Below are positions 1,574 through 23,108 of a DNA stretch of 64,000 bases, piece after piece. The translations under genes were made by a program, and so were the position numbers. The notes below the pieces were generated by a model. It saw nothing but the letters and a program-made list of their open reading frames with translations, had not been told where the DNA came from and made no database searches. Position 1 is the first letter of the stretch. The number at the start of each line of letters is the position of its first letter. Location of the stretch: positions 62,001 through 126,000 of IMG/VR virus record IMGVR_UViG_3300032214_000715; one strand, 5' to 3'.

Positions 1574-1792
1574 TTAATAAATCCCAAGAATTCGTAGTTC
1601 ATCAGCGGTGAGTAGTGATTGTAGCCTACTTACCAATATCTTACGATTTTCTTTGTATTCTCGCCAATGAGCATCAATTTGAACCCAACGTTTCTTGCTC
1701 ACTGTTTTGTTGTATCGTGCGATCTCCTCATCAATCTCTTGAAGTTTGCGCGTTGCGCCAGACTTTGGAGTGCTTTCGTCATCAGTTGTCAT
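1574..1792 (-). CDS. Hypothetical protein
   Basis: 72-aa ORF in operon context. Confidence 0.6.
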   Translation of the reverse strand: MTTDDESTPKSGATRKLQEIDEEIARYNKTVSKKRWVQIDAHWREYKENRKILVSRLQSLLTADELRILGIY

Positions 1793-1804
1793 GATTTTTC
1801 TTGA

Positions 1805-2233
1805 TTATTTTGTAAGAAGATAGGGCTTGTTCCACTTGCCGACCTTTACATCAACGTAGTAAGCAATGTCAAAGTGATCAACCATAGTATCACTGTTGTC
1901 ATACCAACCAGCCGACTTGAGAGCCCGAAAAGCCTCAGCCAGAAAATTCTTGGCACTGCCAGAAAAATGCTCCTGAAACCAATATGGATTCACATCAATA
2001 TATTGCTTATTACGAACGTAATCAACTTGACTGGCTTCCATCTTGCGACCGCTGTAGCTATCAGCATCGGTCTTGATAAAATTCTCAACAAAATCAATCT
2101 TGCCAGATTTGAGAGTCAGCACGATAGTAGAGTGATTGTCAACAGACAGTGAGCCCTTGATGCCATACTTTTCCATAATGGGCTTGATCTTAGTAGCAAT
2201 TTGCTTCTTCATTTCCTGAGAGACATAAGCCAT
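1805..2233 (-). CDS. Hypothetical early protein
   Basis: 142-aa ORF with AGGAG RBS directly after the promoter at 2269-2297. Confidence 0.75.
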   Translation of the reverse strand: MAYVSQEMKKQIATKIKPIMEKYGIKGSLSVDNHSTIVLTLKSGKIDFVENFIKTDADSYSGRKMEASQVDYVRNKQYIDVNPYWFQEHFSGSAKNFLAEAFRALKSAGWYDNSDTMVDHFDIAYYVDVKVGKWNKPYLLTK

Positions 2234-2268
2234 TTCTTAACTCCTTGTTGCTTTCTGACTATGAATAC

Positions 2269-2297
2269 AGTATATCATCAATCTGATTTATTGTCAA
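2269..2297 (-). promoter_or_regulatory. Sigma70-type early promoter, representative of a family of about 20 copies
   Basis: TTGACA-17-TATACT. Related copies at 3965-3993, 4563-4591, 5668-5696, 5940-5968, 6230-6258, 6562-6590, 7008-7036, 7997-8025, 9301-9329, 15050-15078, 20067-20095, 20711-20739, 21765-21793, 21902-21930, 22098-22126, 22500-22528, 23073-23101, 24625-24653, 25450-25478, 63674-63702. Confidence 0.85.
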
Positions 2298-2328
2298 ATT
2301 TTCTCATTCGACTTAAAAAGACTGTTGA

Positions 2329-3240
2329 TTAGCACTTCCAGATATAAATCTTGTCTTGTTTCTTTTTTCCTGACTGTAGAGAACTTTGTCGTTGACCCAT
2401 TTGCTGTTTCAAATCTTCTTCTTCGTCGCAATCTGGCAATCCAAAGCTTAAAGCATCCTTGTACATTTTTGGAGAAATATTAAAGCAAACGTGACCGCCC
2501 GGCTTAATATTGTCTACGCATTTTTGCCATAGTGGAATAAGAAATTTCTTGTAAAAAATTTCATCAGATTCCCACTTAGACATATGTTCATAGACTTCTA
2601 AGTTTACATATGGCGGACTTGTCAGCACGAAATCATAATCAATTTTAGAAAAGTCAATATCTAAACAACTTGTCCATAGCATTTCTAGTCGCGACTTGTC
2701 ATCATAGTTTTTCAAATATGAGATCATATCGCGATAAGCGGGAATCATTTCTACGTTTGTATCTATTCCGGTGTAGTTTATTCCTAAAGCCCAGGCTCCT
2801 AACATTCTTCCGCCCCACCCAGCAGTGGGATCAAGTACACTGGTAGCTTTGTATTTTTTGTACAAATACTTGGAAGTTGTTGCTTTGAACATAACAACTG
2901 AGCCTAGATTTATACGAAAACACTCAAAGATGTTTCCAGCGGCAGTTCGCCCACCGCGATTTCTGTTTCTAGTATTGCTAATTAATTTAGCACGAGCGAC
3001 CTCATCATTCCATATATCGTAGATTGTTTTATCGCCGCGACGACACTTCAATAAATTTTTCAATTGAAAGTGATACAGAACTGGATTTCCAGCAAAACTA
3101 TTGGAATTAGTCGTAGCTTGAAATTTAATTAAGTTTTCAAGATCACGCACTAACTCCGCGTCGGTAATATTCTTGTGATTTTCTATATCTGTTATAGTAA
3201 CAGACTCTAAATTATTATTGATTGGCTTTATTTTTTTCAT
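2329..3240 (-). CDS. DNA amino-methyltransferase (N4-C/N6-A)
   Basis: Motif I VLDPTAGWGG and catalytic TSPPY. Confidence 0.85.
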   Translation of the reverse strand: MKKIKPINNNLESVTITDIENHKNITDAELVRDLENLIKFQATTNSNSFAGNPVLYHFQLKNLLKCRRGDKTIYDIWNDEVARAKLISNTRNRNRGGRTAAGNIFECFRINLGSVVMFKATTSKYLYKKYKATSVLDPTAGWGGRMLGAWALGINYTGIDTNVEMIPAYRDMISYLKNYDDKSRLEMLWTSCLDIDFSKIDYDFVLTSPPYVNLEVYEHMSKWESDEIFYKKFLIPLWQKCVDNIKPGGHVCFNISPKMYKDALSFGLPDCDEEEDLKQQMGQRQSSLQSGKKKQDKIYIWKC

Positions 3241-9362: not shown

Positions 9363-9386
9363 AAAAAAGCACCCGAAGGTGCTTTT
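9363..9386 (-). terminator. Intrinsic terminator after tmRNA coding piece
   Basis: AAAAGCACC-TTCG-GGTGCTTTT plus T-run. Confidence 0.85.
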
Positions 9387-9655
9387 AGGTTTTTTCTGTT
9401 GCCCGGTATTTCCTACCGCGATAGCCGGTTTAGGCAGCCATCAGGAATGCTTCATTGTTAGCATTTAAAGGTTTTGCTTCTACAGTCGAGATATCTCAAC
9501 ATTAACGACTTCTGCTTTGCCGATTCTAATCATTTCTTATTAGCTCCGTCGAATCCTTTCATCCCCATAAAAAACATTATATTGCTTTTTATGAAAATGG
9601 TGGAGATGCCGGCATACGATAGCCGGGTCCGCAACTCATCAGATAATGACTTTCA
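9387..9655 (-). ncRNA. ssrA: Two-piece (circularly permuted) tmRNA; tag (A)ANNEAFLMAA
   Basis: Acceptor piece ending CATCTCCACCA (9598) lies upstream of GGGGATGAAAGGATTCGAC (9566); 7-bp acceptor with G3.U; tag frame 9462-9430. Confidence 0.9.
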
Positions 9656-9666
9656 AGGAAAATATC

Positions 9667-10353
9667 CTAGCGAATATTTTTATTTATCTCAATCATTCTG
9701 CCAATTTTTATTAGTTCAGTTTCATATAGCATTCTTCTTTCGTGTGATTTTTTACCTTCGTCAAGATTTACTAAACAACCACTATGAATTATAAGCCCAA
9801 AAATATCAATTAGCTTGGATTCTATCGACAATGCTTCATTTTTTGTCATGTTTTCTTTAAGAATAGATACTGAAATTTCAGAACCAGATTTTTTTATTTT
9901 TTGACGATATTTTCTATGCGAATCATTTCTATCTAAATCGTATGCTCTAGATCCTTGACCCATTCCTATATAAAATGGCTGATGCTGCATTCCAATCGTC
10001 GCCGCAAAAGTAGTGACTCCGTGTTTTCCTATAGCTATTTTTTTAGAAGGATCACAGTGAGCATAAACATAATAAGAATTATCAGTGACGTCTTCGTTAT
10101 ATAAATGAAGAATATCTGTGTTGTAAATGTTGACGCACGACTCAAATACTTCTTTTGAATGCTTATTCTTAGAATAATGACCGTGATTGGATCTCAAATT
10201 ACCTAACATATTTTTTGACCACGTCAGTAATTTTTTTAGTTCTTCTTCTGATTGCGAATCAACTTCTATATTCCATATAGAAGTATTACGTATCTGACCT
10301 TTAGTGTCAGTGACCTGTTTTCTTTTTATTTCCATACTAGTAGTATAAGACAT
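9667..10353 (-). CDS. GIY-YIG (LEM-3-like) homing endonuclease
   Basis: YYVYAHCDP...PFYIGMG...R, plus EALSIESKLI and LVN. Confidence 0.8.
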   Translation of the reverse strand: MSYTTSMEIKRKQVTDTKGQIRNTSIWNIEVDSQSEEELKKLLTWSKNMLGNLRSNHGHYSKNKHSKEVFESCVNIYNTDILHLYNEDVTDNSYYVYAHCDPSKKIAIGKHGVTTFAATIGMQHQPFYIGMGQGSRAYDLDRNDSHRKYRQKIKKSGSEISVSILKENMTKNEALSIESKLIDIFGLIIHSGCLVNLDEGKKSHERRMLYETELIKIGRMIEINKNIR

Positions 10354-17370: not shown

Positions 17371-17469
17371 TAGCGACCCTTTGTGGGCAGGATTCGAACC
17401 TGCAAGTGGCTTCTATTTCCACTGGCCCTATTAGAGGCCTATGTTTACCATATTCCATCACCACGGGTC
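17371..17469 (-). ncRNA. tRNA-like RNA (type II body, bulged 9-bp acceptor, abnormal anticodon loop)
   Basis: D-arm, long variable arm and perfect GCAGG-TTCGAAT-CCTGC T-arm. Confidence 0.6.
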
Positions 17470-19338: not shown

Positions 19339-19423
19339 TGGTGGAGTGTACTGGGATCGAACCAGTCGTGCCCGAAGGCGGCGGATTTACAGTCCACTGC
19401 ATCACCATTGATGCTTCCACTCC
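19339..19423 (-). tRNA. tRNA-Tyr(GTA)
   Basis: Type II cloverleaf with CCA. Confidence 0.93.
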
Positions 19424-20118: not shown

Positions 20119-20439
20119 TGGTGCCCGGAGCCGGAATCGAACCGGCACGGCCGAAGCCGAGGGATTTTAAGCGTGTTGTCTCAAAGTTTCCAATGAGCAC
20201 GGACTATCTCTTTACCTTCAACATTACTTGTTAAGGCAGTGGGCGTTCTATGCTGGTTATTAAGAGGGCTTTACCTCTCCAGTAGTCTCTACACCTTCAC
20301 TGAATGTATTCAGTGCTTGGCTCGCGATTGCCATTTTACAGGCTCTCCCGAATTAACCCACAGTTTACTCACACATTTCTGTGTGAGGGGGACGGGCTTT
20401 CTGGTCCTCCCTTGTGTCTACCTATTTCACCATCCGGGC
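20119..20439 (-). tRNA. tRNA-Leu(TAA), intron-containing
   Basis: Exons 20439-20408 and 20171-20119 rebuild AGGGA-CTTAAAA-TCCCT. Confidence 0.88.
20172..20407 (-). mobile_element. Group I intron (about 236 nt) at tRNA position 31/32
   Basis: TTAATTCGGGAGA, GTAGAGACTA and AAGAGATAGTCC core elements; terminal G. Confidence 0.85.
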
Positions 20440-22470: not shown

Positions 22471-22710
22471 TTCTTGTTCCTTTTTTCTAACTTGAATACA
22501 GTATATCAGTTACCTGATTTATTGTCAACTGTTATCTGTAGTGTGCTTATCAGCCCATCCTGTTAATTCAAGCTATACACCCTTACCAGATGTTCACACC
22601 GTTACATGCGGGGGTTATTTCCCCTATCGTATGCCCCCGTAACGAGAGGCATATGGGCTGATAAACACACTATAGATATCTGTAATGCGTTTTAGGCTGA
22701 AGACTTCATA

Positions 22711-22780
22711 AACTCTAGAGGGATTCGAACCCTCGTCACCGACCGATGGGCCAGTGTCTTATCCGCTAGACGATAGAGAC
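22711..22780 (-). pseudogene. tRNA-like element with short anticodon loop and no CCA
   Basis: D-arm and GAGGG-TTCGAAT-CCCTC T-arm, inside long hairpin 22678-22874. Confidence 0.6.
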
Positions 22781-23108
22781 TCCCTCCTTTTTCGCTCGGC
22801 AAAGCTACTCTGATCGGGGTGAAGTAACAGACCTTCTGACGATTGCCGCCATCAGCCTAAAACACACTACAGATTGTTAAAGAACTGGACAGTTTACGCT
22901 ACTGTCAAACGAAGACCTGTAGGCTATCAGGCTGCCACGCTGATGTTAACACCGATCAACGGGATTGTGCTTCCCGAAACTTCTAGACAGTGACGGTGGG
23001 AGTTTGTTGTCCCGCTTATGTCAACAGTCTCAGAGACCCTGTTTTTTGATCAGTTCTTCAGCGTATGAATACATTATAGTTGAAGACACATTTATTGTCA
23101 AATTTTGG

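Follow-up and report, generated by a model that had tools for sequence, protein, structure and literature searches.

The only tRNA-Leu(UAA) gene of the jumbo phage described here probably carries a functional self-splicing, IC3-like group I intron, belonging to an old, diverse and mostly phage-borne family that is inserted at tRNA position 31/32 and has an A31:U pair at its splice site. The anatomy of the gene, its junction, the P1 register, and the conservation and covariation of both tRNA and ribozyme are established here from the window (the whole stretch of 64,000 nucleotides that was analysed) and from its relatives.

Results

Split tRNA-Leu(UAA) gene and its junction

The gene is composed of three parts:

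20439-20408, minus strand: tRNA-Leu(UAA) exon 1, 32 nt, with the acceptor 5' strand, D-arm and anticodon-stem 5' strand (standard positions 1-31)
20407-20172, minus strand: group I intron, 236 nt, with 5' end GGACCAG and 3' end ACACG
20171-20119, minus strand: tRNA-Leu(UAA) exon 2, with 5' end CTTAAAATCCCT, first base C32 and an encoded CCA at the 3' end

Exon 1 ends in CACAAGGGA, its last nucleotide, A31, being the -1 nucleotide, and no U is present in its last 10 nt. The insertion lies between A31 and C32, which is the boundary of anticodon stem and loop, and the whole anticodon loop CUUAAAA is found in exon 2, followed by the anticodon-stem 3' strand, a long variable arm, the T-arm and the acceptor 3' strand. 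Rfam model RF00028 matched positions 20180-20414 of the minus strand with 56.1 bits, against a gathering score of 50 (E = 1e-13 locally). The split gene was not called by ARAGORN with default settings, and with introns allowed it was reported as tRNA-Leu(taa) i(33,236), with the intron of 236 nt following raw nucleotide 32 (standard position 31). This is exactly the junction proposed in the earlier note, in which exon 1 ends in AGGGA, the intron ends in G and the whole loop belongs to exon 2. A 5-bp anticodon stem, a 7-nt loop and a G at the intron 3' end are given together by no alternative junction.

The tRNA array of the phage

The source IMG/VR record has 239,163 bp, a CheckV completeness of 68% and a GC content of 39.8%, and carries 29 tRNA genes in an array on one strand. 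Among the Leu codons in the long ORFs of the record, UUA is the most frequent (34%), and no second tRNA-Leu(UAA) was found in the 239-kb record, the split gene being the only one. A second split tRNA gene was found in the window:

Exon 1 15029-14996, intron 14995-14795, exon 2 14794-14753, minus strand: tRNA-Lys(UUU) with a 201-nt group I intron

The intron of tRNA-Lys(UUU) scored 69.3 bits in Rfam, sits at 34/35 and forms a canonical ACUU/GAGU P1 with U.G, so that the phage also has a conventional group I intron, which is a useful internal control. The tRNA-Lys(UUU) gene was missed by default ARAGORN and mislabelled Leu(taa) when introns were allowed.

In addition, a phage-encoded, permuted two-piece tmRNA is located upstream of the tRNA array at 9385-9708 (minus strand; Rfam tmRNA_permuted 82.7 bits, alpha_tmRNA 62.5 bits). 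Three further tRNA-like loci at 17379-17467, 22709-22781 and 19342-19423 (minus strand), namely two ARAGORN 'tRNA-???' calls with 2-nt anticodons (aa, at) and one Rfam match of 34.4 bits with no ARAGORN call, may be tRNAs with odd anticodon loops.

A family of 31/32 introns

Relatives were collected with a search pattern anchored on J8/7-P7 and the 3' junction, in which P1 was left unconstrained and omega-G and CTTAAAATCC were fixed, the invariance of these two elements being built in by design. Matches were obtained at 16 viral and 73 metagenome loci, representing 80 unique sequences, 53 of them complete enough for a tRNA call. The family thus comprises at least 53 distinct phage or metagenome sequences, all with A at -1, and the ARAGORN junction was the same as that of the window in the 52 others. 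Median pairwise identity among 50 aligned introns was 67%, the lowest value being 53%, and the contigs hosting family members, up to 321 kb long, come from very different phages and environments. Both features singled out in the earlier note, the unusual insertion position and the absence of U.G, were upheld and extend to the whole conserved family, and the A(-1) site is apparently not a defect but a conserved type of splice site that had not been described before.

The 27 pattern matches without a tRNA call are truncated contigs or non-tRNA contexts; of the two loci that were inspected, L097 and L130, neither contradicts the family pattern. An exact 17-mer across the 5' junction, used as a probe, recovered one true relative and one chance match in GC-rich coding DNA (L003). 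No full-length family member was found among the INPHARED phage genomes, where only core-level matches to crAss-like and other introns were seen, and a match in Synechococcus phage S-SRM01 was its psbA intron.

Several individual loci differ from the common arrangement. Read by hand, L097 (about 1660-2330, minus strand, contig Ga0247611_10002699) is a tRNA-Leu(UAA) gene seemingly with two group I introns, neither of which was reported by Rfam at the gathering score. The first follows the U of GAACGGU in the D-loop and has a CGGU/GCCG P1 containing U.G and a 3' end in CCUG before AGACGCG, and the second lies at the 31/32 site with C at +1. In L130 (contig Ga0154020_10344520), the family intron and exon 2 are present, and what stands before the guide is not exon 1 but the 3' end of a different tRNA, an arrangement that may reflect a remnant, a rearranged locus or a split gene. 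The pairs L099/L113, L110/L119 and L124/L139 and other pattern loci have a group-I-like P7 3' strand followed by G and CTTAAAATCC with a downstream sequence that is not tRNA-like, and are either chance matches or introns in other genes. The sole member in the genome collection (L078) lies on a 1.7-kb contig in a betaproteobacterial MAG and is a very near relative of the window's clade; phage DNA has probably been placed in a bacterial bin here.

Covariation of the spliced tRNA

When the relatives were spliced in silico, all 53 products were called tRNA-Leu(taa), and 52 of the sequences were different. Among these 52, compensatory changes were observed in the acceptor, D, anticodon, variable and T stems, with up to six pair types per acceptor pair, and the anticodon-stem pairs 27-43 and 28-42, which span the intron, covary. 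P9.0, with 3 bp and three to five pair types, ends directly at the invariant G that terminates the intron. At the other end, the +1 nucleotide is free to vary (A in 23 members, G in 17, U in 13, and one C in L097) as would be expected of an intron base, and does not belong to the mature tRNA. Some intronless phage tRNA-Leu genes agree with the spliced product of the window at 82-83 of 85 positions, the differences being confined to the D-loop and variable arm, and the exact ligated 27-mer at the junction occurs uninterrupted in at least 118 viral contigs. The 31/32 junction is supported by four independent lines, namely ARAGORN, cloverleaf covariation, P9.0 at omega-G and the intronless phage genes.

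Judged from these sequence patterns, tRNA and ribozyme are both under purifying selection for structure, with which a dead tRNA gene, whose intron landed at or slid to a site where splicing is impossible, is hard to reconcile. The lack of a U.G pair, of spliced phage RNA in the four metatranscriptome runs described below and of a call by default gene finders would all fit a dead gene. Against this, compensatory changes spanning the intron preserve a perfect cloverleaf in 52 distinct versions, every core helix of the intron is kept in the same way at a median family identity of only 67%, and the gene is the phage's only decoder of its commonest Leu codon. We regard a dead tRNA as highly improbable.

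P1 register at the 5' splice site

The elements around the 5' splice site are as follows:

20408-20411, minus strand: P1 5' strand, exon positions -4 to -1 (GGGA, tRNA positions 28-31), paired in 50 of 50 sequences by RNAalifold without constraints
20394-20407, minus strand: intron 5' segment, the L1 or P1-extension hairpin region, in which GGAC at +1 to +4 can pair with GUCC of the guide
20388-20393, minus strand: internal guide sequence GUCCCC, with exon GGGA paired to UCCC (20392-20389) and A(-1) facing U20392

As in other group I introns, an internal guide pairs with the end of the 5' exon, but the U at -1 in a U.G wobble, near-universal though not absolute in such introns, is found in none of the 53 members. 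Every member has exactly one ATCC or GTCC in its first 50 intron nucleotides, and the guide of the family is a fixed six-nucleotide element, G-U-C-C-S-C, that abuts P2 and pairs through UCCN with exon positions -4 to -1. The -1 nucleotide is A opposite U, and -2 and -3 form G:C pairs, in all 53 members. Position -4 is also paired in all 53, as G:C in 41, C:G in 11 and A:U in one; position -5 is paired in only 14. In the window, where -5 is an A/C mismatch, P1 has 4 bp. When guides were shuffled among sequences, the observed pairing at -4 to -6 was reached in 0 of 2000 shuffles, and on a tree built without the P1 columns the pair type at -4 changed seven times by parsimony, at least four to five of these changes being forced by well-supported branches.

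P1 registers shifted by one nucleotide in either direction fail in all 12 members in which -4 is not G, and A(-1) thereby comes to face U. Because the three splice-site bases (A, U and G) never vary, the A:U assignment is supported by the register of the neighbouring pairs and not by covariation of its own, and most simply the comparative data would be read as a Watson-Crick A:U pair ending a P1 of 4-6 bp. P1 is a copy of the anticodon stem, since UCCNN of the guide mimics tRNA positions 39-43. A junction with U at -1 was also considered, 13 members having U at +1 so that GGAU/GUCC with U.G is possible; it was rejected because an 8-nt loop results and because +1 is A or G in the remaining members.

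The earlier note had suspected unusual splice-site recognition, which was right in substance with regard to the missing U.G and the A at -1. It had also drawn P1 as AGGG(A)GGAC with GTCCCCCT, the splice-site A being bulged, and this mechanism is probably wrong. For the window, the proposal would have exon (A)GGG/CCC(U) stacked on intron GGAC/GUCC with the A bulged between them. As drawn, it reaches -17.1 kcal/mol on the window sequence, against -14.4 to -16.8 for the comparative P1, and the MFE structure of the window, its lowest-energy local fold, uses GGG/CCC, the bulged A and GGAC/GUCC. GGAC at +1 to +4 is restricted to the window's own clade of about 10 sequences, all of which keep GGACC at +1. 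In the other members, about 40, the helix cannot form (+1 to +4 being UCAG, AAGC, GAAU and others), and in the members with C or A at -4 the register is fixed with A(-1) opposite U, so the bulged helix is not supported as the P1 of the family. Moreover, the CT of its CCCT strand belongs to the covarying P2 of 7-8 bp (CTCACAC/GTGTGAG), so that the bulged helix borrows one or two bases from P2. GGAC/GUCC better fits a helix formed within the intron after exon release: an Azoarcus pre-tRNA structure paper reports that, once the exon has been released, the guide is taken up in a shifted register by the 5' end of the intron, and by analogy GGAC/GUCC may be such an intron-only, post-splicing pairing. 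A bulged A at the splice site is therefore quite unlikely even in the window, and the A(-1):U register is retained below.

Possible pairing of the guide with C32

The G on the 5' side of the guide U (20393 in the window) is G in 52 of 53 members and can pair with C32 of exon 2; its near-invariance can thus be explained, from sequence, by a role as P10 partner of C32. The triplet ending in this G is GAG in 25 of 53 members, and a 3-bp P10 (CUU/GAG or CUU/AAG) is possible in 27 of 53, the exon side being invariant so that covariation cannot show in this helix. In the window the triplet is CCG, and P10 has only 1 bp. GAG-UCC is the complement of the ligated junction GGA-CUU, with U34.G.

Ribozyme core and remodelled P4/J4-5

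The remaining elements of the intron, all on the minus strand, were assigned as follows:

20368-20387: P2 hairpin (CTCACAC/GTGTGAG) with a GAAA-type loop, six pairs having 4-6 pair types each
20322-20361: P3 5' strand, J3/4, P4, J4/5 (GA), P5, J5/4 (AA) and P4 3' strand, from the family alignment
20293-20321: P6 stem-loop, all pairs in 50 of 50 sequences with up to six pair types
20283-20292: J6/7 and P7 5' strand (GACTA), from the Rfam alignment, complementary to TAGTC at 20206-20202
20253-20282: extra hairpin between P7 and the P3 3' strand (J7/3 insertion), nine covarying pairs, paired in 49-50 of 50
20202-20243: P3 3' strand (CCCAC), P8 hairpin, J8/7 (AAAGAGA) and P7 3' strand (TAGTC), from the Rfam and family alignments
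20172-20200: P9.0 (GTG/CAC, covarying, 3-5 types), P9 hairpin and omega-G at 20172

The window intron has the complete group I core, with P3-P8, the P7 pseudoknot and J8/7, and it has omega-G and P9.0, of which only P9.0 is independent evidence, the G having been fixed by the search pattern. Unconstrained RNAalifold on 50 relatives recovered P1 (with A-1:U in 50 of 50), P2, P3, P4, P5, P6, the extra P7-P3 hairpin, P8 and P9.0; nearly every core pair was kept in 46-50 of 50 sequences, with many compensatory changes. The P7 pairing GACTA/TAGTC was read by hand, as this pseudoknot is not modelled by the folding tools.

The family departs from its relatives in P4 and J4/5. A G.G opposition in P4 (in the 20322-20351 region of the window), flanked by covarying pairs, was found in 49 of 50 members, and J4/5-J5/4 forms a 2x2 loop, with GA (47 of 50) opposite GA or AA (49 of 50). 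The relatives with U(-1) that were examined, comprising classical Leu, Asn, Arg, fMet and Ile2 introns, the Lys intron of the window and about 40 phage protein-gene introns, all have a regular P4, with J4/5 being AAA, GAA or AAG opposite CAA, UAA or CGA. The phage protein-gene introns have the same P6-P7 block as the 31/32 family. In group I introns the U.G pair docks on the A-rich J4/5-J5/4 loop, for example in the Azoarcus crystal structures. Loss of the wobble coincides with the remodelled P4/J4-5 receptor, and this coincidence in the alignment suggests a functional link between the two.

RNA data and proposed splicing pathway

Four metatranscriptome runs were compared with the locus. The assembled contigs include unspliced genes of close relatives, one of which spans 20204-20422 with seven differences. 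Contiguous AAGGGA-CTTAAAATCCC tRNA-Leu contigs were also present; their short exons, closely resembling intronless genes, do not allow them to be assigned to the phage, and these apparent joints, considered as spliced phage product, come from other, intronless tRNA-Leu genes. The phage-specific parts of the 85-nt spliced sequence are the D-loop AAATAGGTAGA and the variable arm CGGCTTCGGCCG, and no spliced read attributable to the phage was found in the four runs.

From the conserved structures we infer self-catalysed splicing at 31/32, with site selection along the following lines. UCCN of the guide would pair with the anticodon-stem 5' strand (28-31) to give a short P1 with the terminal pair A31:U at the splice site, and exogenous G would attack after A31. 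The G on the 5' side of the guide U would then pair with C32 (P10, CUU/GAG in about half of the members), so that the guide reads the ligated GGA-CUU. Omega-G, positioned by the 3-bp P9.0, would be displaced and the exons ligated, whereupon strand 28-31 would exchange the guide for exon 2 positions 39-42 and form the anticodon stem. With the wobble pair missing, geometry probably determines where cleavage occurs: a P1 of constant 4-bp length, ending at the splice site and at a constant spacing from P2, would act in concert with the remodelled P4/J4-5 receptor.

Three points were counted against this explanation, namely the report, cited in Williams 2020 (10.1101/2020.01.27.920355), that Watson-Crick replacement of U.G inactivates the Tetrahymena intron, the 4-bp P1 of the window and the slightly lower energy of the bulged-A fold. 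The first two would equally fit an intact core with an intrinsically weak, wobble-less 5' site, which would need a helper (a phage or host protein, or an RNA chaperone) or act as a slow or conditional timer on tRNA-Leu(UAA) supply during infection, and so would the unspliced copies readily visible in the metatranscriptome assemblies, although such contigs could stem from DNA carry-over. The 236-nt intron contains no maturase or other ORF, a single protein partner shared by such different phages and environments is not obvious, and the conserved changes in P4/J4-5 suggest adaptation at the RNA level. We consider a weak site of this kind unlikely, and self-splicing through the A31:U site is the preferred explanation.

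Comparison with known introns

A first comparison is with the classical tRNA-Leu(UAA) intron, which shares with the family the host tRNA, a compact tRNA-type core with omega-G, a P2 with GAAA-type loop directly after the guide, and a guide GAG reading CUU. The statement in the earlier note that classical introns insert after U34 with U.G was checked on about 20 cyanobacterial genes, all of which have exon 1 ending in GGACTT, an intron with TTGAGCC before P2 and a terminal G, and exon 2 beginning with AAAATCC. The window intron has the classical host tRNA, but neither the insertion between U34 and A35 nor the CUU/GAG P1 with U34.G: the classical site is 34/35 with U34.G, whereas that of the family is 31/32 with A31:U, and CUU lies in exon 1 and P1 in the former and in exon 2 and P10 in the latter. 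The P1 of the family uses an anticodon-stem strand, so that P1 and the anticodon stem are mutually exclusive, and its guide has an extra U (GAG-U-CC against GAG-CC). The J7/3 hairpin, the P4 G.G and the GA/GA or GA/AA J4/5 loop are family features, although the J7/3 hairpin, absent from classical cyanobacterial tRNA-Leu introns, also occurs in the related phage protein-gene introns. The classical introns are chromosomal, whereas the family is phage-borne.

In a core tree, the family and the classical introns came out together, apart from the phage protein-gene introns (96/94 support), and monophyly of the family was not rejected on this short alignment (p-AU 0.12 and 0.46). In a second tree with other tRNA introns, in which most classical sequences were lost to trimming, an Asn intron grouped there too and the sister group was unresolved. 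A hypothetical slide of both splice sites by 3 nt from a classical intron, moving CUU from P1 to P10, would be compatible with the trees; direct descent from the classical intron is not established by them.

The Leu.3Cg introns of proteobacterial tRNA-Leu (10.1101/2020.01.27.920355) also have a Watson-Crick pair at the 5' splice site; they carry a pyrimidine at -1 (C:G) at the classical 34/35 site, whereas the family has a purine (A:U) at a new site. The tRNA-Lys(UUU) intron, from the same phage and tRNA array and also a compact tRNA-type group I intron, differs in its 34/35 site, its ACUU/GAGU P1 with U.G, its regular P4 (UUCGGU/ACCGAG) and its J4/5 GAA. The Azoarcus tRNA-Ile(CAU) intron ('Ile2.5Ug') has a similarly minimal IC3 architecture, a short P1 and an intron 5' end that re-pairs with the guide, but its type is inserted after U36 with CAU/GUG and U.G. 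Archaeal and eukaryal bulge-helix-bulge tRNA introns are alike only in interrupting tRNAs outside position 37/38; they are spliced by proteins and have no ribozyme core, whereas the family has a full group I core.

An example of the tRNA-Ile(CAU) type was re-read by hand in L072/L160, an Omnitrophota MAG. ARAGORN in intron mode misplaces some junctions, and 'Arg(tcg)' in L072 is better read as a tRNA with CAU anticodon, an intron after U36 and a CAU/GUG P1. Several classical tRNA-Leu(UAA) genes were labelled 'Ser(aga)' (cyanobacterial loci L171, L173, L175-L177 and L181 are among those misread).

In the survey of about 80,000 bacterial genomes in Williams 2020 (bioRxiv 10.1101/2020.01.27.920355), which covered all eight anticodon-loop positions including 31/32, 5,292 tRNA group I introns of 21 types were found, with a U/G pair in 98.5% of raw calls. 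Leu.3Cg was the sole non-U type; reasoning from Tetrahymena, that paper expects it to be inactive and calls for a test. The A(-1) type is absent from the types described in its text (10.1101/2020.01.27.920355), and under its nomenclature the 31/32 type would be named 'Leu.0Ag'. Beyond Williams 2020, the searchable literature, in which coverage of subscription journals is incomplete, yielded no precedent for a -1 purine or for phage tRNA introns inserted at 31/32.

Discussion

We tentatively propose, as a possibility that falls short of probable, that the 31/32 family is a lineage of natural group I ribozymes that choose the 5' site without a wobble or a pyrimidine at -1. Such ribozymes would use a 4-bp copy of the anticodon stem as P1, ending in A:U, and a co-evolved receptor made of the P4 G.G and the tandem GA-type J4/5, and would be derived from an ancient tRNA-Leu(UAA) intron by the 3-nt slide. 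The U.G pair at the 5' splice site is among the most conserved group I features, and textbook accounts of cleavage-site choice rest on it. If the proposal is true, U.G would be one of at least two natural solutions and not a mechanistic requirement of group I catalysis.

Dozens of natural A:U variants with altered P4/J4-5 provide ready material for experiments on the contribution of the wobble and on its possible substitutes. More speculatively, where a U at the junction is to be avoided, these introns might be used as a different scaffold for RNA circularization or trans-splicing by ribozymes.

The range of bacterial-type tRNA intron sites is extended to the stem-loop boundary and, in one relative (L097), to the D-loop. 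Genes of this kind are missed by default tRNA finders, so that the tRNA complements of phages are under-annotated, including, in the present case, the decoder of a major Leu codon.
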